64,000 bases of DNA from positions 4,216,001-4,280,000 of the forward strand of contig CDRNST010000214.1 of NCBI GenBank assembly GCA_977016875.1, read 5' to 3'. Position 1 is the first letter of the stretch; every line of letters starts with the position of its first letter. This DNA comes from Pavona decussata (taxonomy: Eukaryota). The translations under genes and the position numbers were made by a program. A model generated the notes under the pieces. The model saw only the letters and a program-made list of their open reading frames with translations, searched no databases and had not been told where the DNA came from. Shown here piece by piece: positions 831-27,349 of the stretch.

Positions 831-3800
831 CGCAATGTTGTCTTCAGTGGTTGTAATGTTTGACTGGGACACTGTTTGAAGCACAGCGTTTGCCAGCTGT
901 GTGGCGGACTCTGTATCTCCTGTCTGTAGCAACTGTGTGATCTGACTGTTGTTACCGACGGTGAGCTGAGTAAGCTCTTCCACCGCTATAATTGGTTGGA
1001 CCTAACGGTGCAAGAAGATGCTGCACATTACAAGAGAACCACACTGGAAAGACGTACCGTTTTAGAGTTGACTGCTGAAAGGAATCGCATATATGCTTTC
1101 GATTTGTGTTAGCTGAGCTCTCAAATTTTCATTGAAGCTGCTCAAATGGCAAACACGACTTGGAATATGCGCTTTTTTTGTTCTTCGTCTGGCAAGGGTT
1201 GGCAACTTTCGCTTTGGTTCGTGATTGGCTCATTTCTCCTGGTGTTTGCTATACGGTGGCCCGAGATGTGTCATTGGTTTTTTGTTTTACAGTAATCATC
1301 ATAGAACCTTTGCCAAACAGCAGACGAGCCCAAAATGGTGTGCTGGTGAACTGATCAGGTTAATATATAGACCACCTGGAAAGAGGAGAAGGCGAAGGAA
1401 AGGAAGGAGGAGGAGGAGGAGGGGAAGAAGCAGAAGAAGAAGATTAGTACTTTGGAAAGGCCTTATACCCAGACCGGCTAAAAATAGCTAATTTGATATT
1501 GCACTATTTCTGGGTGTTTCGAAAACTTGTCGACACAAAAAAGAAAATACCCTATTTGTTAATGAAAGAGTAAAACTTCCAAATTAGAGAAAGAAAAGCT
1601 AATATGTCCATGAGATTCAAGGTTACAGACTCACTAAAAATACATAAAACCCACCTGCACTAACAAGTGATCTGACGTGGCTGCAGACAGGCTGTCAATC
1701 ACTTTGATTTCAACGTCAATTCCGTAGCCATCCGTCTCATTCTTTCCTGGTGGCATTACAGTAGTCGCGTAGTGTTCGGAGCCGTGCGCGACCACAGTGT
1801 AAAGACCGGGATTAGTTTTATAGGAAAACTGGTAGGTCAGCGGTATGTCAGGGTCCTGCGGTTGAATAAAATAAAGCAGAAAGAAAACAATATGTTTTGG
1901 CATCGCTTGCTATTTCCGGAAGAATTTGTTTGGCGGGAAAAATACTGCCAGTTGCAAGAACACACAAAACGGCAATTATCTGTCAAGTTGCAAATGGCGA
2001 AAGAATTAAAGATAAACAAAAACAGGCAAAATAGATAGAGATACACACCGACGCAGTTTGTAATTAACGTTTAGTAAACCATCCAGTATTGTTTATTAGT
2101 TTGATCCTCACTTACCTGCCAACCAGTGCAGTTAAACGCAAACTGAGTCGTCATTGCCTCTCCACTTCCGGGTGACACGGTGCACTGTCCGGAGTGGGGT
2201 GGAGCGTTCATTCTGAACTGATAAGCTGCGTTTCCCTCAGGTCCAATTTCCGGTGTCACAGTAGCTTTCAATCGATAAGTAAAGCCTCCAGGGAGTTGAT
2301 CCGCCTTGATGGTTATGCCCGGAAGATTGAGCTCAGTTTGTGTCATTTCACGTGTCAGACTTTCACTCACTTCATTGCCATCAGAGTCGACAGTGACAAG
2401 GTGCCATTGATAATTTGCGTTATCACACGCATGCCCAGTACAAGTAGTTGTCAGACGTATACGAATAGAGGGATTTGCGGGATCGTTACAGTTACTATCA
2501 CATCTGAAAATGAAGAAAAATAAGAGGTTAAGGTTAGAACGCGAAGTTAATAAAGAGACTAAGAATCGCGTTTACGGAAAACGACAAACGTGAGATCTAT
2601 TTGCGTTTATATTTTCTTGAAAAATTAAGTACATAGATGAGAATAGTATAAAATAATTCTGACCTTCGATTCTAAAATTCAAAACTAGTCAATTTTACTA
2701 AGAAACCGAAAAACATTGAGCGGCAAATGTAGGATAAACACAGTCACGTGGGCTTTTCTGCTGTTTACCGTTTGCCGTAAACGTGATTCAAAATCTCTCT
2801 TGATAGGTATTCTTGTGTGTTGGGGTCATATTTTAACAGTGTCAAGCGCCGTGAAGAGCCCCTATATTTCTGTCAGTTGGAGGCCTAGTTTAAGATGTCC
2901 ATTTTTGTGACATGTGACTGATGTACTTATACATGAGACGCCCCGGCACAGCATGATATACTTGTAAACTGGAGCTTTGTCGTGTTGGAGGCTTGTCAGT
3001 AGGTATGACCCATGCGACATTGTAATCTTTTGACAAGGGCGATATCTACATCTTCATGAGAATTAATCGTAGCATTGTTACCCTCCCCCGCCTCACTTGT
3101 CATTATTCAGTTACAAATTGAGGTGAAGGGTTATGACTTGCCCTGACGCAATAGAGCGAGAGGAAACCTTCCTTGAAATAATCGGGAACACTCGATTCAA
3201 TCTTTCAAACGGAACCTTGGACATTCAGTTAAAATTACATGAGGTGTTTGCTTCATTTCTCCTATCCATAACCGGCACAACGCCAACGAGGATATTAAAC
3301 TGCGAAGGATTGAATTTTTTTAAGGTATTTATATAGAGTTACCCATAATAATAAACGAAAACGAACCGTTTTCGAATCGGTTGTTAACCCTAAACACTGT
3401 AGATCTAGCTGGAGCTCTATTCACTCAGTTCTCTGCCTAACAAATGGGTTTTGCTCCGTGCACATCACGAACAGTACTACGACAATAAGGAATATATACG
3501 ATATTGTGTACAGCTCATAAAGTGTCCAAGGTCAGTTTGAGATATGGAAACAGGTTTTATTCAGAATAATCCTAAGGCGGCTTCCCCAATATTCTTACGT
3601 ACCTGATAGTAACTTCTGGCGGATCACCGTTGACTATTTCTATTTCTTGAGTAAAGTCGGCCTCTCGGTCATCCTTCGTCACAACAAGCTTGACGTCATA
3701 CAGTTCTCCTGCAGTCATTTTGCTTGTCTCTAACGTCAGCGTGATGTCACTAGAGTCCAATCTTCCGATCCCAGTCCCAAAGCACCCGCCGTTTCCTGGA

Positions 3801-4362
3801 CCTGAGGATTCGGTGACCACCGGAAGTGTCGCAAGCGAGACATTTGGAAAACTCTCCTGTTGATTCTTACATAACCACGTGAACTGCATTAAAGAGTAAT
3901 TACCAGGCTCCACGTCAGGGTCTCTTGATAACGCGCCATTTAAGCCGACGGCCGTGCCTATTCCTCGAGTGATCTTAGAACCCCCGGCTATCTCGGCTAC
4001 TAACGGGGATTTTGTGATATTGAAATATCCCTCGTCGGTGGTTAGGCCCTCGGGGTCACCAGCCATGGTCACTTTGACAACCACTCGATATACGCCATAC
4101 ACAAGGTGTCTCTTTTGTAAGTGCCACTCAAAGCCATTAGCGGTTGATTGCAATTCAGTTCCGATTCCCTCTTCCAAAGATCCCAAAGAGTCATCCCACT
4201 GAAGTTTAAACAAAAGCCATTGAAACTGTGGTGTTTTCGTGTTACAGTGTGGACTGCCTGTGTTGGCTTCTACTATGAAGTCTTTTGAACGCAGAATGGC
4301 AGCTGCAGATGGTACATCATCTGATAGATTGAGTATACTCACTTCTGGAGGAGTACAGCCGT
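831..4362 (-). CDS. Module 2 of the PKD1-like gene: second REJ module (first 4 exons in window)
   Basis: Exons 3603-4362 (760 nt), 2116-2503 (388), 1655-1855 (201) and 831-1001 (171) parallel module-1 exons 1-4 in size, phase and sequence. Examples: KSPLVAEIAGG vs KSPLVAGIVGG; TTCTGHACD in both. Confidence 0.88.
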
Positions 4363-7300
4363 CTAACAAATAAAAAAACAAACAAACAAACAAACAAACA
4401 GGTTGGAATCGCGGAGAAGCAGATTCACGCATACATTGTGGGAGATGATAAGCATTTCAACTGGCCATTTCCCAGTTGCTGTGAACCTCATTATGAAAGC
4501 GAGGCTAAGTACAAAGCTTTTCATATTCTCTACACATATCAAAATAAATTCAAGTAGACTGGTGATAATCAAACTTATTTGCCGATTTCAATGAAAAACT
4601 GCAATAATTTTTCACTTCTTTCAATCGATACTGCTTCATGATTACATCATTAGTACATGTTATACAATAGAGCACCGTGTGAGACATTCCACTTATAATT
4701 GGGCGGAGCATCACCGCAAGAGAGGCTGTTAGGTCCGTCAACTGTTGTTATTCCAGCAAATGCCTTCGCAACAAAAATCAGTATGAAAGTCTTTTCCCTA
4801 TTCTTTCTAGGGAGTTTATTGTTTTGCTCTATATAAATAAGTTCGGCTGACCTTCAGGATCACTGAGAAGAGTGATCGGAATCATCATATAACTTCCACC
4901 AAATGGAGATAGATGGTCGCAAAGACAATGAAGAGATGTTCGGTTAGATCCGGAACCCACCTAAAAAATAGAAAAAGTAGCCAGTGAACATTTCAAGCGA
5001 GCGTTGTACTTTTCAACTAAGTTTAGAATCCGTGCCATGGCGCCGTTCTGCATGCCAGACAGATTTAGAATCGCAAACGGCAAACGGCGGACGCCGTGAG
5101 ATTCGCGTTTATGTTTTCTTGAGTACATAAATAATAATAGAGAAAAATCATTCAAGCCTTTGATGCTAACGCAAAAGTGCCCAATTTTATTGAGAAACTG
5201 AAAACAGCGAGAGACAAATGTTTGATAAATGTGGTCGCGTAGTCATTTCTGCCGTTTTCCGTAAATGCAATTCTAAATCCGGCTCCCCAAAACCAGGGGG
5301 GGGGGGGGGGGGGGATTTAGGTAAAGAGTTTCACAAATGGCTGAATTAAAATAAGATGCTAGAAGATGGCAATTTTGAGTAAAGCGGATGGCGTGTTGGA
5401 ATTAGTGGTCTGATAGTTGAAGCGAAAAAAAGAGAAAGATAAAGCGAAATGTTTTGTTTAGGTAATGGAGCAATAGCAGTACATGTAGTCATTCTTTTGT
5501 GGCTGTTTTTCAGTTAATATGTTGCTGTGTTATATCGTCATTTTATCCAAATCCCTCATGCTAGTTTGTCAGTCGGAGTACCGCCCTCCCCTCCTTTGAC
5601 CCCGTGGTTTACCTAATCTGAGTAAGCGGCTCTACGAACGACTATGTTGAGGCACGTCAGTAATCTAGAATATCTGAAATCTAGAACTCAGTAACTTGTC
5701 TTCAGGCTCCACTAATACTTTGATCTACTGACAAAAGTCTAAACTACATGAAATCTTTTCAGCGCACCGGCTTTATAATTCATACATCCGCCTCTCATTG
5801 CCAGCACCAGGGAGCGAGGAGAGGCGGCCGTTTCTTGTTACCTAGTATACGTGTCGTTTATCCTATAGAGTGTGTTTACGACAGCCATGTTGGAGGAACG
5901 AACCAATAGAATGATTTTCCTTTGGGAAATAAATTTTATTTTTATACAAATATATTCTATTGTTTGGTTGCTCCAACATGGCCGCCGTGAACACACTTTA
6001 TTTTGTGTGTTCTGGGCCCGCTCTAGTTATGGCATCCCTACCTGTACCATTTAATCACCTTTTTTTTTCAGTTTTGTCCCTGGCGAAGTTAATCAAAAAA
6101 TAAAATGAATACAGCTACTTGTCCGAAAAATAACGCACCCGGCATCCATGAGAGGTCCAGATTTCATTTGTTCTGTTCCACGACTGACATTGTTCCTGTA
6201 ACATACTCATGGTGTAATTTACATCAGTTGCTGGGTCATAGCTTGGCATCGTGGATCTTTTTCTCCGTCTCCTGTCGTTCCCAGTATTTTCCTCATAAAG
6301 GATGCTGATGAAATAGGTTCCCGACCTGCTGATGTCATCTGAGAGGTTCAGCCGGTAAGCGCTATCGTCACAACCGTCTGTCGAATTGTAGGAAAGCTCA
6401 GTGCATGAGACATCTGGAATAGTCTTCTTTTCGTCGAATAGCTGCAAGGTTGGTCGATATTCATAGCGTACAAATACGTCAAAGGTAGAGTACTGAACTG
6501 GTTCAACCTGCCGACAAAAAAGCACACTGTAAACTAGTAATAATTAAAGATTAGGGCGTGCGTTCGATGATCTCGATCCCCGGATCTCTCTCATTTGCCA
6601 AGTTGGTGAAGATGCATATAATTTACTTTAATTTTTGTTGCATAGCCTTATCTAAATCTGCGTTATTATGCAAAGTTAAGTTTTTCCGTTTTTCAGCATG
6701 CTTGTAATTTATTGTAATTTTTTTTCCATTATGTTCTCGTGCTCGTCTTGTCCCGCCTCGACTAGCTTTGTGGCTATTTGTGGGACAAGCTCCTTATATC
6801 ATCTGAATTTGTAAATAAATTGTTCTTGTTGTTGTTGATGTCATTCGCCCCTGCAAAATCTGCGGGGGATGCCAGATACGCGTCCCAAGATCCATTCATT
6901 CGTTGTCGCATACAATCTCGACTCCTGAATCTGTATTAGGAGTGCTTTCTTTCTACGTCGGTAGCTACTCCACTCCGTTTTGATATGAAAGTTTGAAGAC
7001 GGGTATGGATTTTACAATAACTGTTATGAATGTTAGAGCCAAAAAATGGATCAGTCAATTTTCTGAAAAGGGGTACTGGAAAATTCTATATTTTGGTCTG
7101 AAATAGGGTCAGGGTTACAAATCGATCACTATCAATCGATCAGTTGAAAAAATTTCGCATTTTGGCTGAAAACGCTCTAAAATTTGGTTCATTTCGATTA
7201 ATAGCCGCAACGTTCATTCCGTTTATGGGTAAATGAGTGTATGTATGTTATGGATTTGAAGTGCGGAGTACGAACTGATTGGAATAATCATACTGACCCC

Positions 7301-10300
7301 AAGAATAACGCTAGCTCCTTTATGAAAGGTAACGTTTGCTTTATGGTGTTTCAGCTTCCCTTCACTACTCGGCTTGATAAAGCTTGATAGACAAGAACCT
7401 GATGTTATTTCACTTGATATCGTTCTTGGTATCGTGATGTCTATTTCCTCCTTGCTGTTTGTGATCGTCAGAGTTTCTCCTCTGTGATTTTTGAGGACCC
7501 AGCTCAGGACAGGGGAACTGATAGCGGTAGAGCTGTTGTCCCAAGTAAATGGATTGAAACCAGTTACAGTTAGCTGAAAATAAAGCAATGATGGTCATGA
7601 AGTACAGTTTAGTAAGCGCTGTTGTGTAAGGGGACGAGGGTTGTGCTCGAGGACAGGTCTTGGTATTGAAGAGCATTTTATTTGACATTCTCGTATTTTA
7701 GTTTATGTGCATTGAATTTCGCATCTGTGGTTTTGTAGCCGAGAGAGCGTATTTACTCTAGCCAATCACATGTACAACAGACACAAAACCTAATGAACCA
7801 ATCAGAGTTTGAAACAAATACATTTGTTATTTACCTAGACTGTCACTCAACAAAACGAGCACTGTGGTTGGTTGATTCTTGGTCAGGTGCCCCTGATCAA
7901 ATACAAATGTATCGCGACCGGGATACAATTCCGCAGTTGTTGCCCTCTCAGTTGTTTGTTTATATGTTTTGCTGTGATTGTTGAAGAAAAAGTCTAAATT
8001 CACTCGATTGCAAAAACGTTGATACCTAAAAAGCATAAACCGTGAACGATGAGACCCAATGGCTTTATGGGTATAAGTGTACTAAATTTATTTGCATAAT
8101 ATTCTATTCTCGTGCGACGGTTGATAACCAAAATTAGTTGCACGTGGTGAATGATGGAAACTGTCCAAGCTTTCCTTAAAGAGTCAAGTTGGCCAACAAG
8201 GGCCAATTTTTAAACACTACCCACAAATCCGTTGGGTCTCATCGTTCATGGTTTATGCTTTTTAGGTGTCAACGTTTTTGCAATCGAGTGTATATAACAA
8301 AGCACTTAATGTATGGTCCCTGGGGAAACTAGTTAGTTTTGTTTTCCCTCGAGTCCTGATGTTTCAGGAGTCTCGGGAAAACTAAACTAACTGTTTCCCT
8401 CGGGACCTTACCTTAACTGTATAGTAAAAGACGTCAAACGCGGGGAAAATAAGTTTCAAAGAAGATGCTTGACATCAGTATCTTGTGCAAACGTGGTTAG
8501 GGGTGTGGCTATGAGGGGATATTTGGAGGGAATCAGCTAGGGGCGCTTAATTACCATTGTTAGAACTGGCCGGCCAGACCAGGCAGTTCACAAAGGAAAT
8601 GCGCAAATTTGAAGTCCCGGTTATACGCTAATCCTTTCAAATTCTTCAAATAACGCGTACCATTTTCGTAATGTTCAATTTAAAATTTTGTGGAGCGTTG
8701 CCTTCGAAATGACATTTCCCATTACCCGACTAACCGTTGTGGCTGGCCAGTTCTGACAAATAGAAAGCGCCCTTAGCTCTGCTCTCCGCTGTCAGGTATT
8801 TAGTTGATTGACGTTTAGTTATATTCAATATAATAACTCAAATCTGAATTCAATTCAGGAAAATTGGGCATGATATAGATCAATTTGTGCATGACTAACG
8901 TGGTGCTGTGTTCGTCATACGAACATACGAGAATCGCATCAAATCCAATTTAGTTTAGTAGGGATAATTCGTGAAAAACAACACGGTGTTATTCAATCTC
9001 ACCAAAGCATCAATGAAGTTGGTATCGTTGGCCTTTGGGTCAGTAGCAATGGCTCCATACGGGACTTTAAAAACTGCATTGACTCCTTTGATGTCCGTGT
9101 TTATATCCAAAGAACTGGGACTGAGTCTGTTCAGCACCATGTCGAGGGCATTTGTTTTAAGCTCCTCGGGTTCCTGATCCACGACCATATATGTCAACAG
9201 AGATGCAGCAACGTCATCAATGAGCGTGGTGGTGGTATTACGGATTGTTTGTTTGTTCTGGAAACAAACGAAGTTACTTAGAAAAACTCCAGAAAAAAAA
9301 TGCTTACATACACATGACCGCTGCTTTTGAAGGGGTTTCGTTAATCGCGCAGGAGCATGGTGAAACATGGCTAACAAAAGTTAAATGTTTCTCTCGCCCG
9401 TTTTATTGTCATCAAGTTAAACTAAAGGCACTAAAGGCACCAAATGATCTTGCACCTGTTCAAGTGTCTCCTGCGTTCCGTGTGTTATTTTATGAGCTGC
9501 CGAGCGGAGCAAATTGCCCAGTGCAGATAAAATATTCTCAGCTCCCTGTTCCACTTTAAGGACAATTTCTGTTCCGTCAACTCCAGTTGCTTCGTTTTTC
9601 AGCAAAGTGGTTAGGCGAGTTAAGGTTTCAAGGGCAAGTCTCTAAAAAAAACAATAAAAAGACGTGGCTTACTACAATGTAATCATAATGAAAACCAGCT
9701 TGACGGAAGGTACAGCTGAACTATGGTTTCCTTAACGTTCAATTATAGGACGGTGCCTCCTTTGCTACCGCGCACACCCTCTGTGCATCTCGAGATATCC
9801 TTAAGAAGTCAGTGTTACTCGGACCAGTGGCTACTGATTACTAACGTACTTTTGTGTGGTTTATGACTATGCGGGGAAAGAAGATTTTAGCACGGGCTGT
9901 TGGAATCCAAAAAGAAAATTGGAGGTAACCACGTATTTTTCAGCGATAATTTTTAGATTCCAATAGCTTTTGCTAAGATCAACTTCTCCCGTATGGTAAA
10001 AAAGAAAACAACAACAACAAAAAACAAAACAAACAAACAACAAAAAACAACAGCAACAACATCAACAACAACAACAAAAACATGCTAAAGTGCTAGAAAA
10101 CTGGATCTGCCTCCTCGGTAGTCAAGCGAGCGTGAACACCAAAATTTGCAATAAATATAAAATAATCGTATTCGTGTGTAATGAATCAAACATGCTACTG
10201 AAAAACGAGGGGCAAATACTTTCACTGAGTTAGAAACAAGGAGTCCAGCCACTGTCGTTTTTAGAAAAACTGGTGTAGAATTCCGCATTTAGCAGATCCT

Positions 10301-13300
10301 TATTTTGTTTTAAAAAGGTAAAAAACCGCAGCGCCAGTGAATGCTCGTCACGTGTCACATGAATGCTGTGAAGCAGAGGGGAGATAACAAACCTTACGTT
10401 CTGAATACGGCCTACCTGTGTGTTGTTCGTCATTTCATTTGGTTCCACTGTTACTCGTGATATCACTGACGATACTTGAATCAAGGAATATAAATGAGTA
10501 ACTTCTGTGTTGGACATTTGCTCCATGATAAAATCTTTTATCTGAAAAAACAGGAATGTTGTGGGTGTATAGTTAACTGTATTTGAAATGTAACACAAAA
10601 GACCAGTCTTATGCGTGTTTGTTATATGCTAGCATTGCTTCTCCAGCCGACACTTCAGTTTAATTGATAATTACATTGGAAGATTTTTGTACAGTTGTTA
10701 GAACGGGCTGGTTAACGCGAAATTTGTAATGATTTGCAGCGCAATGTACGTTCAGGAAACTTTTGCGACTAGTTACTGCTGATGTGTCAGCCGTAACTAG
10801 AGTGTGAAAAATGTGGTTAATAGGGCTTCACTATAGGGCTTCATTATTGTAAGCCTTTTTACCGTTCAAAACGAAATAATTATTTTCATTAAAAGAAATA
10901 TCATTTGGCTATACCTACTTCTGGTCTGCAATAGCGGTGTGTTTTTCGTGATTTCAACTTGAAACATTCGGTCGTGTTCGATATTCACTTTTTAAAAGGC
11001 CCGTTTAAACGGTTTCAACATTTGCTTCAACGTGCGTTCAACACTTTGTCCAGAACCGAATGTCGGGGGCGTCTGAACAGGTCATTCAACATAGTTGAAT
11101 TGGTTTAAACTTTCATTCAACATGGATTCAACTCATGCTTCCTTTGCTCTCGGAAATATTGAATGGCATTCAAACCGTTTGAACACTCCGTTCAACATCT
11201 GTCCGCGTTTGCCCAACATCCGTTGAACTTTTGTTGCGCGAATGTTGGGCAAATTTTGAAACCATTTAAACGGGCCCTTTTCCGAGTGCTTTCGAGCAAC
11301 GCCTGTTAGTTATTACATACACTTTACTTACTTCGATCTTGGCCTCAGTGGTGATCGTAGCATCTGAATGCTGCAGCGCCTCTAGCAGGGAATTGGCCAA
11401 GTGATTAACCACCATCAGGTTTTTCTTAAAGTTCAATTCATGCTTTATTTTGGCGAAAGTCGACAAGATGTTTAAGTTGATGTTGTCAGGTTTAACCTAA
11501 AAAACGCAGAGATATAGAAGCTGGAAATAAATCAACACAGCCAGCTTTTCATATAATATACAGGAAGCACCTACACTAATCCACCGGTGCTGAAAAATAA
11601 TGGCGACTAGTACATTTAGCTATAATTCTTAACGTACAAAAACCCTAAAAACGCTCATAAATCACACAGAAAAGTTTTAAAAACTTCAAACCTAGCATAC
11701 ACAATGCCGCCAGTTGTTCGGACTGGAACAAATTTCGCCCAAAAAATATGGCTTTCTACGTGCATATTGGCTGTGTTGTGTTCGCAAGGTATTAGGGTAA
11801 AATGCACAGCCGCCATCTTTTTCATTACGGTGTATTGGAATATATTACAAAGAGAAACTTTATTTTCTTGCATGGTAGTGCAAATCAACTTAAGGAACTA
11901 TACAGTAGATTTCCGTAATCTTGACCTCTCAAAAAATTAAAATTCACTCGAATAAGCGAGAGCTGTAGACAGTCACTTGTGATTTAAGGTGAACGGTATC
12001 CAAGGGAAACGTGACTGTTTCTGGTGGAAAAAAGCGGAAAAGTAGACTTCCTGCCTCGTACCCAGAAATCCCTCTCATTATGCCAATCAGCTCGCAAAGG
12101 AAGTTTTGAATGCGAAGGACGAGATGGACTCCCAGAAATTTCGAACTGTTCTTTATCCCAAACAGATCGTTTTCGATGAATACTGGTGACGGTACCTGCT
12201 ATCTCTAACTCCCGCTCTCTTGAAGAAATTTGTTTGTCTTCACGGAGCGCGACTCTTGTTCGGGACCGACCGCCGGTATCCGAGATGCATGGTAGGACTC
12301 ACTTATAATTATTACAATTATTGTTATAATTACTGTATTATTATTATTATTGTAGCAAATCGCGCGCAGTAATGATACAAACACACTGCTACCAAGTAAT
12401 TATCACCTGCAATGTCAAGCTTGTTATTGCAGCACCAAAGTAGCTGTCAACCACTCTGAGTTCAACATCAAGCTTGTGGTTGTTGTCTTCTTTTCCTGGA
12501 GGTAACAGCGTATTGATCTCATCTTTCCCGTACCATATCAAAGTATCCATACCATCGCTAGCTTTGTAGTGAAATTCATAGGTCAACTCGGAATGTGTGT
12601 CCTGGAAAAAATATCGTTATTACATTGGCAATATGCATTGGCTATAAACACTGCAGTCGATTTCGTGGAATAAGTGAATACGAACGCGGTTTGTTAACGA
12701 GAATCAGACAGAACAGTCTTCAATTAAGTAGAAAGTAATGTAACGTTTGCTTAGGTTTTGCATCACTACGCACTGTGATTGGCTGTCAAAACTCGCGCCA
12801 CTTTCTCAACCATTGAGACTGAAGCAAAACTAAAACCAATGGTGAATGTTTGCTTTGGATTTCTCCAAGAATTATTACTGGTTTGGGAAACTATATCAAA
12901 CACTCGAAAGAGTTTTTCATCCGATTTCTAAACACATTGAAGTTGATTAAAAAAGTTCGGATGCTCCTCGTTTTTCCAACCCACTTCTTTTTTGTTTGGA
13001 AATTGGATGAAACACTCTTCCTCGCGTTTGATATAACACGTAAAGCATACAATTCATTTAAACCGAGTAGACGCGCTCTAACTTACTCGATAAAGTGCGA
13101 ACATTGTTTCTGCTTAAGTGGCTGGCTCAGGAGAAGTTTCCGAAGCAAAATTAGGGAGCTTTAGAAAGGACGACGGTGATGGCAGCGGAAACGTCACTAC
13201 TGAGATGAATTCGCGTTTTTTTAAACGTCGTCGTGATTTTCCCACTTCGCTTTAAATCTCAAATGTTTCATCTTGGGGACCGCACCCAAGTTTAGAAAGG

Positions 13301-16164
13301 AAAGGAAAATTCGTCATCGTGTTTCTGTCCTCCATAAAAATCCAATCAGGAAATTTCACGTCATAGTCGTGCAGTAACGGTAAAGAAGTTTACCAAGTAA
13401 TGTAATGCAAGTTCACACTCGTTGCTGTCGCCGTAGCTTAAGTTCCCTATTTGCGTCGTGAAACAAAACGTTGTTTTACCTGATGGAATTAAGAAGTGCC
13501 AAAAGCAATGTTGCCAGTTCCTAGTCTATTCTGGTTTTTACTTACCCGCCACCCTGAACCGCAATCAAACTTGAAATTAGTACTCAACGCCTCTCCACTC
13601 TGAGGTTGCACGCCACAGCTTCCTACATGGGGTCGGCCGTTCATTGTAAAATCATAATCAGCCATTCCATCAGGGCTGTTATTTTGTGTCACGGTGACTT
13701 TAAATCGGTAATACAGAGTTCCGCGGAGTTGCTTTTCTTTCAAGACCATGACGGGGAGATTGAGGTCAGTTTTCATTTTGGCACGAGTCAGGCTTATTTC
13801 TTCCATCTCATAACCAAGAGAATCCACTCTGATAAGCGTCCAATGATATTGCGCCGTGTCGCACGCATGCCCAGTACACGTGGTTGACAGGCTAATGGGA
13901 AATAACGTATTTGTCGCCATTGGGTTGCAGTTTTTATGACAACTGAAAAAAAAAAAATAAATAAATAAACATTGATAGTGACGCCAGTCCCTAGCCTGCG
14001 TAGCAGTCGTTTCCATTTCCTTTTAGCCAGGCGGGGCAAGCGCGCGAGGGCATTGGGCAAAAGGGGCAAAAAAAGTAGGAGCGGCGGGGAGGGGCGCCCC
14101 TCCCCCCCTCCCCCGCTCCTAATTTTTTGCTCCCTTTTGCCCAATGCCCTCGCGCGTCTTTTCGTGCTCAAAGGAAACGGAAACGACTGCTACGCAGGTT
14201 ACGCCAGTCCCCTGAGACACTCACCATATAACCACTATTAGTAACACTAATAATACATCTCATACATCTGTACCAAATTTTTCAAAAAAACATAAACGCG
14301 AATTTCACGTTTGCTGTTTGCTGTAGACGCGATTTTAAATCTCTCTATCATGGCAAGCATAACAGCAAGCGGCTGCTCCGAATACAAGTTCATAGCGAGT
14401 CGGAGCGAGGCTCGCAACGCGGAAGTGAGGTACATACCTCAGCAAATTTGGCAATAATCAGGAGAACATAGACAACAAAAGTCCAATGCCTACTTACTTG
14501 ATCGTCACTTCCGGTGGGATACCGCTGACAATCTTTATCGTTTGTTCATAGTTAGCTTGACGACTTTCCTTTGTGACGATGAGTTTGATGTCATAGGAAG
14601 ATCCCACAGTCAGGTAACTCGAGTTCAAAGAAGTTATGATGTCACTGCCGTTAAGTCTGCCAACGCCATTTCCAAAGCAGCCGCCACTGTTACTTGGACC
14701 AGAGTTTGGCGTCACAATAGGAATATCAGAAACGTGGGAGAAATACGGAAAACTTTCATATTCTCCTTTACACAACCACGTGATCTGCAGTGGTGAGTCG
14801 AATCCAGGCCCCTGGTCAGGGTCTCGACTTGGCGATCCATTTAAGATAATGGCTGTGCCGTGTGATCGTGTTACTTCGCGTCCCCCTACTATACCAGCAA
14901 CCAGTGGTGATTTGAGGATTGTAATCCATCCAAAAATTTCAAAGAATAACCCGTTAGAGGGCATGACCACCTTAAAGTAAATTTTCTTAAGGCCGTAGTT
15001 TAATGTGTTTTTGGGCAGCTTGAGTTCCGTGGAAGGAGTATTAATAGTCTCCTGGTGAGGAATGGAGACTCCATTCTCGTCGATAGTGTAACTCCATACT
15101 ATCCACGTTACTCTTGGATACGTTGTGACGCAGTTTGGCTCAGATACAATGATGCCTCGCAAGATAATATCTTGAGAACGACGGAAAGAAATTACATCTG
15201 CTTGAATAGTGGGGAACCACTCCGGAAGGGCAACATCAGGAGGGAAACAGTTATCTAAAGTAAACAACAACAATTACATAAAGCCTTGTTCAGACTAATG
15301 ACGACAGACAATTTTCTGTAAACAAAAAAAGTCTTCCGGGGGGATACTCCCTATACTGGATTATACTTGCAGGCTCCACCCGAAGTGGGATCGAGGAGGG
15401 GTGCCTTTTGCTCTCCTCGTAGCATGCGGAAAAGGAGCGACATTTCAATTTTTAGCATTTTAAAGGGTCGCAAATTAAAATAGACTGTATTTCTAAAGTG
15501 TAGCAGTAAAGGTGCTCACAACAATATCCAGCTCTTTCTAGCACTTACACTTTGAGAGCCCGACACTACCACTCTTTATCAGTTAATACCACAATAATGC
15601 TATCAAAACCAAATGCCTAATCATTGGCGAACAAAAGATGGAATAATTTGATGTAATAGGTTACGATATCAACAGTATAACCTGTTTTAACTCAAAAACG
15701 ACCCTCATTTTTTTAATATGGAACTGTGATCAGCCTGTCATCTCAGATGCAACATTTTTCAAAGTTTAATTTAAAAAAAAAATGCAGGGATTGGTTTATA
15801 GCAGTCTCAACTGAACCCTCCTTTCGTAACAAAGTTGGGGGTCACCGAGACATTTTTTTGTAGTTATAACCACACCACTTATTTTGAGTGGTAGTATTGA
15901 TCCGTCAAAGTATAAGTGATGGAAACTAGCCACCTTAAAGACCAGCATACGGATTTTCAATTTATTATAGGTGAGTCTTAATAGAGGAGAGGAGGAGGAG
16001 GAGGAGGAGGGGGGGGGGGGTTTACTTTGTAGAGCTTTTAAAGTCAATGATAAAATTAAAATAATGAAAGAAATATAACTGAATAAAATGGTATAACTAA
16101 AAAAACCGAATAAATAAGCGTAAGTTTAAAAGCGATAATCTTACCGTCTGGCCACTCCATCCAT
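831..16164 (-). CDS. Polycystin-1/PKD1-like (PKD1L/PKDREJ family) REJ + GAIN/GPS protein with tandem modules; 3' part continues beyond the left edge
   Basis: All exons are GT-AG, phase-compatible and stop-free: 14498-15254, 13546-13942, 12407-12601, 11332-11496, 10416-10541, 9456-9641, 9003-9257, 7298-7573, 6139-6507, 4852-4960, 3603-4362, 2116-2503, 1655-1855, 831-1001. REJ motifs: SPLVAxIxGG...LNGxxSRDPD, WLC, GGCFG, NxPPHxGxCxVxPxSGEAxxTxFxFxCxGW, LTYxF. GAIN/GPS motifs: FNPFTWD...SPVLS, CQSWNRTNEIWTSHGCRV, HCLCDHLSPFGG. Tentative 5' exons at 16145-16173 and 15549-15616 (see findings). Confidence 0.88.
4852..15254 (-). CDS. Module 1 of the PKD1-like gene: REJ-GAIN-GPS, 10 exons, 2835 nt (945 codons)
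   Basis: Exon sizes are 757, 397, 195, 165, 126, 186, 255, 276, 369 and 109 nt. The module begins and ends at phase-1 introns. The last exon (4852-4960) encodes VGSGSNRTSLHCLCDHLSPFGGSYMMIPITLLSDPE. Confidence 0.85.
8001..8290. mobile_element. Long-TIR MITE (Tc1/mariner-like), internally deleted copy nested in another repeat
   Basis: TIRs of ~60 bp (CACTCGATTGCAAAAACGTTGA..CTAAAAAGCATAAACC..GAACGATGAGACCCAA). Same family as 20137-20571, in the opposite orientation. Confidence 0.75.
8540..8775. mobile_element. MITE (Harbinger-like), degenerate
   Basis: Imperfect TIRs GGGCGCTT..TTAGAACTGGCCGGCC / GGCTGGCCAGTTCTGAC..AAAGCGCCC. Confidence 0.5.
10998..11276. mobile_element. MITE
   Basis: TIRs GGCCCGTTTAAACGGTTTCAACATTTGC / GCAAATTTTGAAACCATTTAAACGGGCC; internal TTCAAC/GTTGAA repeats. 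Confidence 0.7.
13152..13449. mobile_element. MITE family TAGGGAGCTT...AAGCTCCCTA (partial relatives at ~31520-31747 and ~38155-38290)
   Basis: TIRs TAGGGAGCTTTAG / GCTTAAGTTCCCTA. The internal CGTCGTCG/GTTGCCG and GAAATGTACCAAAATGTAAAACGCACG-type motifs are shared by the other copies. Confidence 0.65.
13992..14201. mobile_element. Foldback MITE with TAG..(C/T)TA ends and a 10-bp TSD (Academ/AcademH-like, non-autonomous)
   Basis: TIRs TAGCCTGCGTAGCAGTCGTTTCC.TTTCCTTT / AAAGGAAACGGAAACGACTGCTACGCAGGTTA; almost the whole 210 bp is palindromic. Perfect TSD CGCCAGTCCC at 13982-13991 and 14202-14211. Confidence 0.85.
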
Positions 16165-16289
16165 TTTCCATTTCTGTAAACATAAGATCCTCTTTTACTG
16201 CGGCTTGTTTCATTCATTGATTACAGTGGAGAGACTCCTTTGATCACCAAACAATGAGGAAAGTCACAAACATTAGGGAAATGTGCAAA

Positions 16290-21066: not shown

Positions 21067-24000
21067 TCAGTTTCCTTGTAGCAAATTATGAGGCAATAAT
21101 TCTCCCGAAGTGTCACTCTTTATGTCACGCTTCTCTTCACAATTGCATTCACATTGATGAACGACGGGATAGCTGAACCTCAGCCACCGACAGGAGATGC
21201 GCGAGGTCTCAGTCCCTCTCCTCGCTTTTTTCCCGCCACGGTTTTTGCAGTGCCATCGTAATAAGGACACGGGGGTTGGTTTTGACGGAACGCACGACAT
21301 ACCATGAGGCCAGGAACACTGCTTTTTCACACAGCGTCCAAACTAAAAAATTGAAAAATAAAATTTAATTCTATGATAATGATTATTATTATTGAGTGTA
21401 TTTCAACACCTGAGTTTGATTTTAAATTTTGATTGGCGCGGACCGATTTGATAAAAATCTGCAGTGCACTGCAACAGATTTTCTGAATCGGGTTGACGTT
21501 TATTTTCATGAATCGGTCGTAAATGTGGTGTCCAGCAGGACATACGATTCGTGCCCCGATACTGTTGACAAATCATAACGATATTGCTGACAAATAACTG
21601 AATAACGGGTGAAAAGATAGAACACAATATAATTTAGAAGTAATAGCACTAAATGCTTGTTTATCTTGGTAATAATTCGATCGACCTTGGTCCAGTTTGA
21701 TAGTGCTTAGAATTTTTCTTATCCAATTACTCCGAAATTGTAATCCAGTTACATTTCGACACTAATTTCCTGGCTCCAAGTGATTTTACCGCAACTTAGC
21801 ACTGTTTAATCGTGTCTGGTTTTGCTAGTTGACCTTAGCGTGACTCGATTTAAAACTGTCACCAGGACTAGTAAAAACAAAAAACGAAGAGTGCGCTTTT
21901 CTGGCATTTCCCCCGGCGAAACTTTTTAAACCTTTGAGTATTTTCCCTTCAAATCGTTAGTCTCGGCCATTTTCACGAGAAAAGTTTACCAAAGGAAATT
22001 CGAGATATGAAATTTTGTAAGGTGCATTCTTTTGGGCAATTCCGGCTTTTCTTTTTCCGGTTCAGGAATATACAGAATACTCTAAATATCAGTTCCCACA
22101 AGAACACAATTCCTCGTATTCCTTTTTAACCTAGACCTTTCCAAAAGAACACAAAGTCTTCTTATTCTGTGTATCTAATTGCATCCCCTCCTGTTTTAAA
22201 CTGTAATGTCTTTTGCCATAGGGTCAGTTTCTAAAATACCCTGAAGAAAGAAAGGGTTTTCCTTTCGAAATTTTGGAAAATATAAATTTCCCTAACCGTT
22301 AAACCAGCTCTCTTTTTGTAGATTATTTGTTCTACAATTTTTTGCTGATTAGATCCTTTACTTCAGGATCCGGTACTTTTATTTTGTTGTGGTGGTCTTT
22401 CCAAACACAGTTATTGGTTTTTACTGAAACTGAATTCCATTCATTCAGAGGCAGAATTCACGGAATGCTATTCTAGATCTGTACATTCCGAAAACAGAAT
22501 AGGTCCCAAAGAACATGAAAACCGTCTTTTCCATATGTTACTATTTGGGAAAAACCCCAAAAGAGCGCCATGGCAACAACCTCTACCACACGAGAAACAA
22601 CGGGAGATTGATTACAAATATCTTAAATACTCAAATACTCGCAACTTGCAAATTTCATGGACAAACACTTGGAAACAAGAAAGCAAGGCTTTCCTTATGT
22701 AACACACGTTAGCCGGTGCAAAAATCATTTGTAAATACTCTAGGGAGCTACCTTAAATTAAAAGGATAGGAACTCGCCGATATTGTGGCGCATTTCAGAT
22801 CAAAATAATTGATCTTTCAAACCCCTTTTCACAGCCTGTGTACTTTCCAATACAGTCCGGGAAAGCCATTTTTAATTTACTTATTTTTCAAATTGGACTG
22901 CATGTAGCTTTCAATAACTTGCTAAAAATCTTATGCACGAGCCATTCGCGTGCTGTCTAATTTGATTAACATGTTAGAAATTCGAATCCGATTTAACCCT
23001 TTAAGCCCCAAAAGTGAGTAGCACCGAATTTTCCCTTTATCAGAATGAAGGAAAATAACAACAAAGATGTGTCGCTTATAACAGATTCTCCCAACTAGCA
23101 GTATAAGAAATACAGAGAGAACGGTGTGGAGAAAATGCACGCATGCCTGTGCTACTTCGGCCACGGTGCACAAATATTTCATATATTTATATCCTGACTT
23201 TAAATATTTGTAATACATCCTTGCTTCTTTTGTAAATAGTTCTAAACAGTTTGAAATAAACTTGACTTGACTTGACGTGGACTCAGAAGGAAAATGACCA
23301 AAAAGGTAAAACTGCAAAAATCCAAAACGACTATAAATTAGGTTTGCTCGGGGCTAAATGGTATGGCTAATACAAGTGTAAACTCCTTATCTGGGGCTAG
23401 AAATCTTAGTTATGCTTTTCAGTATCCTGAAGTATGACCATTCCGGAAGTCCATTACTGTTTATCTCTTCTGAAAATTCCTGTGAGTTTTACTTTAAGCC
23501 TGCATTAATCCGTTATCCAGAATCTCCCAGTTGAGTTTAAAGGGTGAGTGATTTTGTTAATTTCTACGACAACCTTTACCTAGCACCTTTCCCGAGTTGT
23601 TAAAACACTCAAAATGAATGGTTAGAAAAAGCAGCCCCTATACAGGTTTTAACGTACGAGTTTTCCAACGCAAAGGCAAGACTTGATGCAATTGGCCACT
23701 AGTATCAATGGTACAACTTAAAAACAAAAAACTAGGGAGTTTTTTTTTTAAGGTTTCATATAAATAATATATAATGCAAATAGCTCTTGACATTTCAAAG
23801 TGTCACTAAAAATAGCTGACTAAGTCTCTTCAACCTCTTAAGGCCTCTTTATAAGTGCATTCAGTGCTCATGCAACATCGAGATTTTCTATTTAACGATA
23901 TGGAACCCAGCATCAGTAGACAAAATACCTTTCGTTTTACCTTTCGTTTTGTTCATTGAGGAAAAGAGCCTTGGGTTTTCTCAAACGCCTATATGACGCT

Positions 24001-27000
24001 TTTGATCAATGCTAACGGAACGCTCGCCAAGATATTTCTTCCTGAATTTACATTCAATTAATTACAGAAACACGCAAATTATAATACGATTATCACTGAT
24101 GCGTGCTAGGGAAGGTTCTCTCGATTGTATGTTTAACACAGGAATTAAGGAGTGATTCTTTGCGTTAAAAGCGCCTCTCAGGGAAATTTCAATCCAATTG
24201 CAAGACCCGCAAAGTAGCTTTATCACTAGGCTGCTTACTTAATTTTTCGTTAGGTTATTATAAAACGCCCACTGTGAAGAAATTTTGTAATATTCTTATA
24301 ATAACTTTCAGAGCCGATCTTGAGGCTGTTATGTGGTTACCGCTCTTGAGTCTGTGGATAAAGTAATCCAGAACGAGACCGCTTTGATACATCGAGCAGT
24401 ACCAGTTTCATTTTCCAGTGCTGTTCGTTTCAAGTTATGTTTCACACAAAATTTGGAATGTTTTTCGTTTTGAGCTGGGGAGGTGATTAGTTTACTGAAA
24501 TGTGTTTTCAAACGGACGACTTGTGCAAGCTACAAGTCGATTTGATTTTTTTCCGTTTTTCGATGAGGAAAAGAGGAAAAACTGAACACGTCAAAGTCTC
24601 CTTGATCGGGGTAGAGATGGGTGGCTAAACGTAGCCTGTTTATGTTCATACATGCGAATAGCTTTCACCACAGCAAAGCAGTGCAATCAAATTGCCATGA
24701 AATACCCACGCAAATCGCCCGCATAGTAGATCTGAAATCTTAAAACATTAAACGCTGCAGAATTTGTCAAGTCATTAAACACCTTTGCTAAAATCGCACG
24801 ATAACCTATGTAAACGGCTCCCAAACAGTTTCCAAAGTAGGTTTTCAGTGGGATGTGTGAAATAACGCTGAAGGGATCGACAAAATGGGCCAACGGGATG
24901 AAACAGCTGTCCCGCGATCCCTGTCACTCACACCCGATTCTTATCAACGCAGGATCCCACGCGCGATCAAGATAAATGGGCAGGATGACGGGACGGGATA
25001 AGAATTAACAGCGGGAAGCTCGAGAGACTTCAGACAACTATGATCGAAACACCGTGTTACACATCCCCCAAAGGCATCTTTGTCACCCCAGCCGGAACGT
25101 GCTACCGATCATGAATTTGTAAATCGTAGTATCTAATCAAACAGTATGAACTCGACAATTACTCTGTACAACTCGGAGCTCATGGAGAACTTCTGTGTTT
25201 GCTCGTTTTACATAGAATTAGCTATGCACAGCATTAGAAGTTTGTTATGCATAGAATTAAAATCGGTCGCTCGTAACAATGCGATCACTCTTTGATCAAG
25301 AATTCGCTACATCCGGATTAGTTTAGTTTAGAGTTCGGAATATCGAATGGAGATTTGTCACCAAGGACCAACATATTTCATATCTTGTTGTCAGTCAAAA
25401 GAAGAACAGGCGTTTTGAAGTAGGAGAGGACAGAAAATTTAAAAGTGCACTTGAGGTGATCAAAGGGCTGCAGGGCCGGCGTTTCCAGAACCTTTCAACC
25501 TTCACGCCAATCAAAATGCAACCGAAATTTTTGTATAAAACCATAAAGTGTGCCAAACCAAAGATTTTGAGAAGTGGTTTCCTGTAGCTCTGTTGATATA
25601 ACGTTTGAGTTCGTGTGCAAACCCCAGTAAACTTTGACATTCAAGCCGGAAAGACGTTGAGTAGTACTTTTCCGTGGATTCAGTTTTGTCGGCAAGGTTT
25701 TTCCCACTTTTTGTGTCTTGAAGAAATGCAGAAGTAACCATTTGTATATATTTTTATATATTTCAATATGGTTCTGTTCACTGTTTTGTTCAAGGTGGTT
25801 CTCATTTGAAAAAATCCTGAATTGATGTCCAACTGAACGGACGCTATCTAGTGAGCGGAACTTTCCTGTGGTTCTGTATTGCTGTGCTGTAACAGGCTCA
25901 AACTCGGTAGAACAAATCCTAAAGCGTAACCATTCAAATGAAAGCTACTGAGCAGTTCATGTGATACTGTTTATTATCATGCACAAGGTGGTTCAAACTT
26001 TAGAATCTGTGAATGAAATCCTACAGTGTGTCCATTCAAATGAAACCTGTTATAAGCAATACTTTCGTACAGTCGTAATGCAGCTTATTTTGCAGTTCGA
26101 GATAGTTCTAACCTCACCGAGTCTGAATCAAATCCCAAATTGCGTCTAACCATTCAAATGAGAAGTACTTTCCCGCACTATGATGGAGCTCCTGTGTAAC
26201 CTGTAGAATGCTGAACTGGGTTGTTTTGTATAACTTTGAAGTCTGCAGATGAAACTCTTAAGTGTGTTGCGTAGTTCAAACTGAAAGTTGACATGGAAAG
26301 TACTTTTTGAAGCAGTCAGCTTTTCTGAGTGTCACTTTAAACAGCCACCAAACATATCAATTGGAAACGTCAAAATAATAGTTCCGTTTGGTTAGGAATC
26401 AGACAAACTAGGTTGCGGGTGGCTAGGACGAAAATGGATAAAAATATTGCAACTTGAAAACAATGGCCAATCTTCAATCGCTGTTAACTATGAATGGTGT
26501 GTTCTTACTTGAAGAAATCAAATGATGTTTTCTTCTTGGTGGTCTAAGAGCAATTTTGTTTAAACAAAGGTACTTTTGCCAAGAATTTGTGTAATTTGGA
26601 CAAAACATAGCAAAATCCCCGTAACAATGCCCCTTTAACGAAGTCATTATTTTCGGCTATAAATTTTACAAACTGAAGAAGGGAAAAAAGGAATTGACGC
26701 AATATTCTGACGAGTGGGTGATAATTAATTAAGCAGCCCAGACAGTACAGCTACACGTCCAAGCCGAATCGGTGCATGAATTTGATCTTTTTCTAAAGGT
26801 CAGTGGCTCAATTCCAACAATCATTCAATTGTCACTTACCGATATCCACCTTGGCCAGTAGCAGAATCCCAAGTCTTTCCACATATGCTCTACAGGGCAG
26901 TCTGATTTGTGAATAAGCCATTTCATCATATACCTCTCCATAAACAGAGATGGCTTGCCCAATTTAGGCACGGTCTCGTTCCTAATAACCTGCCGGAGAA

Positions 27001-27334
27001 AGTTTTTTTCGGAGGTGGTGATGCCACGCAAAGAAATTCGCCTCACGAATTTGTCCGATGCCTGCACGGGCTCCGTTATGGACAAGAATCTATCGTCAAT
27101 CTTCATTCCAAGACGTCTGCGAAGTCTTCTCTCGTTCAAATCTCGTTTGGTCGGCCTCTGAAGCTCTTCATCACAATCATCGATACTCTTAGGTTGTGTG
27201 TTATCCAGGGGATCATTAAGTAACTCGTGGCTGCTGCTTCGTACCGGCGTCAATGGGAAAAAGCACTGTGAAATTGTAGCCATATACAGCAGCAAGGCCG
27301 CTAATATGACCAGTGGTGACGATAATGTCTTCAT
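21067..27334 (-). CDS. NOG: Noggin-family (noggin-like) secreted cystine-knot protein, 256 aa, two exons
   Basis: Exon 1 (26840-27334) has a signal peptide MKTLSSPLVILAALLLYMATISQC, then PTKRDLNERRLRRRLG..DDRFLSITEP and WL..SDCPVEHMWKDLG.YWPRWIS. It joins through a phase-0 GT-AG intron (21343-26839) to exon 2 (21067-21342): FGRCVKKQCSWPHGMSCVPS...LLRWHC...CRWLRFSYPVVHQCECNC...stop. The nine-Cys noggin pattern is present. The symbol denotes the family; exact orthology (noggin vs noggin-like) is not resolved. Confidence 0.92.
25780..26330 (+). repeat. Degenerate ~100-bp tandem/dispersed repeat (CCATTCAAATGAAAGCTACTGAGCAGTACTTT family)
   Basis: Several decayed head-to-tail units in the noggin intron. 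Inverted relatives at ~39830-39925, ~40240-40345 and ~58500-58595. Confidence 0.65.
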
Positions 27335-27349
27335 GGCTTTTGCCTAATC

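Follow-up and report, generated by a model that had tools for sequence, protein, structure and literature searches.

Human PKD1 and PKDREJ and the sea urchin suREJ3/SpREJ proteins follow a domain order of REJ, GPS, first transmembrane helix (TM1), PLAT, further transmembrane helices, polycystin domain and PKD channel. Described members of the PKD1/PKDREJ/suREJ group have one REJ and one GPS located directly before TM1, and GPS cleavage at HL|T is cited for suREJ3 and PC1 in two papers (PMC4890752, PMC1934368). Among the ten SpREJ proteins, the nearest oddity is the split REJ of SpREJ7 (PMC1934368). A locus of Pavona decussata that differs from this layout was analysed in a 64,000-nucleotide stretch, referred to as the window (positions 4,216,001 to 4,280,000 of contig CDRNST010000214.1 in the 602-Mb assembly GCA_977016875.1; G000:C214:4216001-4280000), which contained no N runs and carried the feature on its minus strand. 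The locus probably represents a single minus-strand PKD1-like gene of the PKDREJ/suREJ3 type with an ectodomain of two tandem REJ plus GAIN/GPS modules. An extra REJ-GAIN/GPS unit (module 1) would be located N-terminal to the canonical unit (module 2), and its GPS (GPS1) would be followed by a REJ.

The borders of the module 1 exons were drawn from stop-free stretches and a check of the splice borders. Ten exons with AG/GT at every border were located on the minus strand from 15254 to 4852, with a total of 2835 nt or 945 codons and phase 1 at both ends.

14498-15254, minus strand: module 1 exon 1, 757 nt, phase 1 in and phase 2 out, N-terminal REJ (Pfam REJ 2.3e-31)
13546-13942, minus strand: module 1 exon 2, 397 nt, REJ middle (Pfam REJ 1.3e-16)
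12407-12601, minus strand: module 1 exon 3, 195 nt, REJ end (Pfam REJ 9.5e-09)
11332-11496, minus strand: module 1 exon 4, 165 nt, kept in the three other species compared below (species A, B and C)
10416-10541, minus strand: module 1 exon 4b, 126 nt, GT-AG borders
9456-9641, minus strand: module 1 exon 5, 186 nt, GAIN-like region
9003-9257, minus strand: module 1 exon 6, 255 nt, GAIN-like region
7298-7573, minus strand: module 1 exon 7, 276 nt, GAIN-like region, donor GGG|gtcagt
6139-6507, minus strand: module 1 exon 8, 369 nt, multibasic loop RRRRKR|S followed by the first half of GPS1 (C-x2-W-x6-W-x4-C)
4852-4960, minus strand: module 1 exon 9, 109 nt, second half of GPS1 (C-x-C-x-HL|S) and a 19-residue post-cleavage strand

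Exon 4b was absent from the exon list of an earlier reading of the window (the first-pass annotation) and is required because 945 codons were reached only when it was counted; in cross-species tblastx it showed 62-67% conservation in species A and B. Both modules matched Pfam REJ (PF02010) over three exons each, with every match above the 25-bit cut-off. Exon 8 terminated in CQSWNRTNEIWTSHGCR, and exon 9 consisted of VGSGSNRTSLHCLCDHL|SPFGGSYMMIPITLLSDPE (SPFGG...SDPE) plus one base, followed by the phase-1 donor GAAG|gtcagc. The halves of GPS1 scored 10.9 and 17.8 bits against Pfam GPS (PF01825), each under the cut-off of 22.5 because an intron splits the motif over exons 8 and 9. Both exons read together gave the canonical pattern C-x2-W-x6-W-x4-C-x12-C-x-C-x-H-L-S-x-F with four Cys, two Trp and HL|S. 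GPS1 was not juxtamembrane, with 19 residues after the cleavage site and then a predicted splice into the second REJ (REJ2). No relative was found for an exon 8 profile among PDB sequences.

All family members examined carry a furin-like multibasic loop (RRRRKR|S; RQKR|S) a short way ahead of the GPS, with module 1 of species A as the one exception. This loop could be a candidate second, protease-dependent cleavage site inside the GAIN region.

Module 2 begins within the window with four exons, the first of which was preceded by a long pyrimidine tract and the phase-1 acceptor ttgttag|AC GGC TGT.

3603-4362, minus strand: module 2 exon 1, 760 nt, phase-1 acceptor, N-terminal REJ (Pfam REJ 7.3e-36)
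2116-2503, minus strand: module 2 exon 2, 388 nt, REJ middle (Pfam REJ 3.9e-20)
1655-1855, minus strand: module 2 exon 3, 201 nt
831-1001, minus strand: module 2 exon 4, 171 nt, with the gene continuing to the left of the window

Exons 5-9 of module 2 were located left of the window, followed by PLAT, Polycystin_dom and PKD_channel at C214:4203681-4213714. The GPS exon of module 2 (HCLCNHL|TSFAGG) also encodes TM1, which starts approximately 33 residues past HL|T, and the C-x2-W-x6-W-x4-C...C-x-C-x-HL|T pattern of this second GPS (GPS2) was recognised by eye. PLAT (PF01477, 2.6e-21) was found 1.1 kb past the GPS2/TM1 exon on an exon of 539 codons, and Polycystin_dom (PF20519, 1.3e-24) and PKD_channel (PF08016, 2.1e-36) shared a 639-codon exon. 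Module 2 and the gene body together have exactly the domain order of the PKD1/PKDREJ/suREJ group and form an ordinary PKD1-like/PKDREJ-type member, and the predicted gene is such a member with an extra module.

The exons and coordinates claimed by the first-pass annotation were all present in the window, as were its GAAG|gtcagc donor and ttag|AC GGC TGT acceptor, and the GPS that it had described as intact-looking over 6139-6507 and 4852-4960 carries the canonical four Cys, two Trp and HL|S. The exon series that it saw repeated in the two modules (757/760, 397/388, 195/201 and 165/171 nt) was reproduced with identical phases in exons 1-4, and the clear but diverged similarity it noted amounted to 36-52% identity exon by exon (tblastn, E 1e-58 to 1e-7), with 43% for exon 1. 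Once the 126-nt exon 4b had been added, module 1 again came to exactly 945 codons, and its two ends are both phase 1. The Pfam scan it proposed returned REJ in both modules, sub-threshold halves of GPS1 and a GPS2 half-exon at 22.7 bits against the cut-off of 22.5. Extension to the left, where it had expected the membrane and channel region, recovered GPS2/TM1, PLAT, Polycystin_dom and PKD_channel after module 2. Its suggestion of a multi-GAIN polyprotein was not supported in any form with more than two modules, the count being two with module 2 leading directly into TM1-PLAT-channel.

Orthologous loci were identified by a library search with module 1 exon 1 in the ENA assemblies ERZ25071797 (species A), ERZ25071802 (species B) and ERZ25067872 (species C). 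All module 1 exons were present and open in the three species and module 2 was directly next. Identity to the orthologues was 56-65% for exon 1 of module 1 and, in species A and B, 77-79% for exon 1 of module 2. Recurrence of the exon series, its phases and the junction in three other assemblies is not a matter of chance, and anatomy shared by four independent assemblies excludes an assembly artefact. The junction between the modules compared as follows.

4363-4851, minus strand: predicted inter-module intron, 489 bp, nothing conserved but the splice sites
Length of this intron: 489 bp in the window, 841 in species A, 415 in B and 197 in C
Residues before the donor: ...SDPE in the window, ...SEPE in A, ...SEPA in B and ...SEPE in C
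Donor, its codon shared by all four: GAAG|GTCAGC (window, species A), GCAG|GTCAGC (species B) and GAAG|GTCAGT (species C)
Bases after the phase-1 acceptor, itself a pyrimidine tract ending in AG: AC GGC TGT in the window, AT GGT TGC in A, AT GGC TGC in B and AT GGC TGT in C
Read-through past the donor until a stop: 7 codons in the window, 34 in A, 19 in B and 1 in C

The read-through tails were unrelated in sequence and length among the four species. Across the family, the exons preceding REJ exon 1 (the signal/mucin exon of the paralogues, a 5' mini-exon and module 1 exon 9) had a final G in phase 1. The terminal G of module 1 exon 9 in all four species indicates that the Asp opening D-x-C-x-P-P would be restored by a splice between module 1 and module 2.

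Reverse-transcriptase open reading frames (ORFs), representing retroelement insertions, lie within introns of the gene's orthologues from species A (L028:8316-9782) and species C (L036:12460-13557) and account for part of the between-species difference in intron length.

The ratio of nonsynonymous to synonymous substitution (dN/dS) was calculated from Nei-Gojobori counts per exon that were then summed. For module 1 the ratio was 0.28 between the window and species A (dS 0.86) and 0.33 between the window and species B (dS 0.73), with all single exons below 0.65 and exon 9 at 0.17-0.18. Exon 1 of module 2, with dN/dS of 0.19, evolves more slowly than module 1. A dN/dS of approximately 0.3 indicates that module 1 is no relic but is translated under constraint. 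Comparison of the four assemblies supports the old duplication of a symmetric cassette, kept under selection, that the first-pass annotation had suggested: donor and acceptor are conserved, the intron is short and unconserved, and dN/dS is 0.28-0.33. Its central claim, that GPS1 precedes a second REJ ectodomain and not a membrane helix, is supported by this comparison of genomes.

Three tandem paralogues were located further left, each consisting of a single module with PLAT and channel exons after it, and single-module paralogues in total included those at C214 ~4.06-4.14 Mb and about 30 others. These share with the two-module gene the exon series, the phases, the multibasic loop and the downstream PLAT and channel, and differ in having only one module and in starting with a signal and repeat exon. 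Exon 1 of module 2 was closer to the tandem paralogues (55-57% identity) than to exon 1 of module 1 (43-45%). The first exon of the paralogues encodes a signal peptide (MAQPKKRQVPYLIV...) and then a Thr/Ser/Pro-rich repeat with N-x-T sites, of 78 bp (26 residues) per unit and 600-800 residues in all, and ends in the phase-1 donor ACA G|gtatta. The two-module gene was without this exon, which was located in the paralogues as follows.

C214:4115056-4117485 and C214:4145118-4147049, minus strand: signal plus repeat exons of paralogues (L013 and L010/L011, respectively), repeat copy number variable

Thirty-three GAIN/GPS exons were found genome-wide among the matches listed, and a PLAT exon was located 1.5-3 kb downstream of each except that of module 1. 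The predicted two-module layout is unique in this genome among the matches listed. Elsewhere, three exons resembling REJ exon 1 were spaced approximately 10 kb apart at C287:52598-73224 (L029-L031), upstream of one GAIN/GPS-PLAT-channel gene; this locus was considered as a further multi-module gene and rejected, having one GAIN/GPS only. Five such exons were located on C35 at 2.99-3.16 Mb, with no GPS, PLAT or channel matches nearby. N-terminal REJ units may therefore be duplicated or used alone elsewhere in the genome.

At the 5' end, one candidate first coding exon was located beyond module 1.

16145-16217, minus strand: candidate first coding exon, 24 codons plus one base, donor GAC G|gtaaga in phase 1

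The peptide of this mini-exon is polar, with an R-x-K-R motif and without a hydrophobic core. Species A and B keep its ATG, frame and donor, the differences being synonymous changes and a 3-nt indel that preserves the frame, and in the window an in-frame TAA was located two codons upstream of the ATG. It was the sole conserved exon between module 1 and an upstream Noggin-like gene; in species C neither the mini-exon nor Noggin was found in the 10 kb upstream.

Several observations weigh against a single two-module gene. The dN/dS values show translation of module 1 only and say nothing on its join to module 2, and the GAIN domain of module 1 is predicted from exon-wise homology to module 2 and the GPS motif. 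With C at +3, the exon 9 donor reaches a low 2.7 bits on a generic consensus, a worry that is eased by the GTCAG-type donor also found at module 1 exon 7. Library and word searches of large protein sets returned unspliced genomic ORFs only for this locus and no spliced protein. A signal peptide was not found for the two-module gene, though its ectodomain is approximately 1900 residues, and nothing credible was obtained from scans for an ATG with a hydrophobic core and a phase-1 donor, for internal hydrophobic exons with phase 1 at both ends or for a homologue of the paralogue signal exon. In the window only, a reading as two transcription units is permitted by an ATG that lies in frame 69 nt before module 2 and by an AATAAA approximately 40 nt past the exon 9 donor. 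Module 1 would then encode a membrane-less REJ-GAIN protein (...SDPE-GQPNLFI-stop in the window) and module 2 an ordinary PKD1-like gene with an unrecognised first exon, which we consider unlikely. The stop reached by read-through within 1-34 codons in four of four species, the lack of a two-REJ protein among the library matches listed and the occurrence on C35 of REJ-like exons that lack GPS, PLAT and channel are in agreement with such a division. However, the conserved phase-1 acceptor of module 2 exon 1 means that an upstream exon is needed, and the introns of 197-841 bp contained no conserved block or ORF and no ATG with a hydrophobic ORF and a phase-1 donor, the 197-bp intron offering scant room for a promoter and a first exon of module 2. 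The read-through tails are unconserved, while the preceding exon 9 has dN/dS of ~0.17, and the last base of exon 9 is in all four species the G that restores the family Asp codon. A start or signal exon of its own for module 2, which the first-pass annotation had named as the finding that would make the modules two tandem paralogues, was sought in the intron and none was credible. A start at the in-frame ATG, with a signal-like peptide from the pyrimidine tract, was rejected as this ATG is not conserved and corresponds to stops in species A and B, and a signal-like intron ORF (MKSFVLSLAF...) was rejected as it had neither a phase-1 donor nor a counterpart in other species.

The single two-module gene could also be refined such that module 1 is a facultative cassette, with the 5' exon spliced to either module 1 or module 2 to give one- and two-module isoforms. 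Both routes are in frame, as each of the three junctions is phase 1 and contributes the G of the Asp codon, and the faster evolution of module 1 relative to module 2 exon 1 (dN/dS 0.28-0.33 vs 0.19) also speaks for such a cassette. Selection, however, shows that module 1 is used and not how frequently, and we hold such isoforms to be possible at rather less than an even chance. That module 1 is instead untranslated and decaying, left over from a tandem paralogue whose membrane half was lost, is highly improbable. Its GPS exon is the sole one without a downstream PLAT among the 33 in the matches listed and it is more diverged than module 2, but in four species, at dS of ~0.7-0.9 and dN/dS of ~0.3, its ten exons have kept approximately 945 codons open and their splice sites intact.

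Under the preferred reading of one gene with two modules, module 1 would have arisen by an old duplication of the symmetric, phase-1-bounded cassette of the family. The sequence GAG ATT CAG CGG (E-I-Q-R, towards TM1) of module 2 exon 9 aligns with GAA G|GT CAG CGG of module 1. The duplicate may therefore have formerly extended nearer to TM1, until a point change in coding sequence created the donor GAA G|GT. This new donor would cut the GPS exon 19 residues past HL|S, which would be enough to retain the last GAIN strand, and would splice to the phase-1 acceptor of the first REJ exon of module 2 with the Asp codon restored. The predicted protein would consist of a short N-terminal peptide, REJ1-GAIN1(GPS1), REJ2-GAIN2(GPS2), TM1, PLAT, more transmembrane helices, the polycystin domain and the PKD channel. 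As the cassette is symmetric, an isoform skipping module 1 would also be in frame.

In adhesion G protein-coupled receptors (GPCRs), cis-autoproteolysis of GAIN is expected from family knowledge, with both fragments held together non-covalently (PMC13197933). The GAIN of adhesion GPCRs (latrophilin, BAI3) and GPS1 have the same pattern of four Cys, two Trp and HL|S/T and a retained hydrophobic strand, and the four Cys, both Trp and HL|S of GPS1 were kept in the four species. By analogy with PC1, suREJ3 and the adhesion GPCR family (PMC4890752, PMC1934368, PMC13197933), self-cleavage of GPS1 at HL|S is plausible and could occur. After cleavage, REJ1-GAIN1 would hang non-covalently on the retained strand, which would form the N-terminus of REJ2, and the outer unit might serve as a mechanically releasable tether or a shed, ligand-binding piece. 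The post-cleavage strand of adhesion GPCRs and PC1 runs into the membrane domain and can be a tethered agonist, whereas the GPS1 strand has no adjoining membrane domain and thus could not act on one directly.

A more tentative proposal, and rather unlikely in our view, is that the receptor works as a GAIN device with two stages in series. Self-cleavage at both GPS would give a non-covalent chain of REJ1-GAIN1, REJ2-GAIN2 and the membrane channel subunit on which graded force or ligand pull would act stepwise. The outer unit would be stripped first, so that REJ2 shows a new N-terminal strand or ligand specificity changes, and the membrane-proximal tethered strand would be unmasked only afterwards; skipping of the cassette could tune this behaviour. 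If such a device exists, GAIN would be a modular extracellular breakpoint free of any membrane domain.

GAIN/GPS is usually taken as juxtamembrane, and a conserved GAIN/GPS under selection before another ectodomain would show it to be a free-standing extracellular cleavage or attachment joint. The locus may offer a natural construct for asking what effect GPS cleavage has without a membrane domain and whether REJ-GAIN is a repeatable mechanical unit. It would also document the doubling of a 945-residue ectodomain by a symmetric phase-1 cassette and one new donor in old coding sequence.

A prior description of multi-GPS PKD1-like proteins, which the first-pass annotation had noted would remove the novelty, was found neither in the representative library (best 150 of 296 matches) nor in the literature searched. 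Among those best 150 of 296 library matches, no long protein had two REJ exon-1 matches, and the long matches P0044 and P0149 were canonical PKD1 proteins with a single REJ and a single GPS. A two-GPS or two-GAIN protein was not mentioned in the SpREJ survey, a 2026 adhesion-GPCR review or phrase searches, an absence that is not proof. Relative to what is known, the new features of the predicted gene are an extra complete REJ-GAIN/GPS unit and a non-juxtamembrane GPS on an otherwise ordinary PKD1-like gene.

Two neighbouring elements were also recorded. A two-exon Noggin-like gene (26828-27343 and 21073-21342, minus strand; Pfam Noggin 2.4e-19) was located upstream of the polycystin gene and was also present in species A and B, with its exon 1 being 83% identical to that of B. 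A repeat of approximately 240 bp at 285-544, with inverted arms at 291-358 and 466-533, occurred in more than 100 genome copies at 92-96% identity and looks like a miniature inverted-repeat transposable element (MITE) or a short interspersed nuclear element (SINE).

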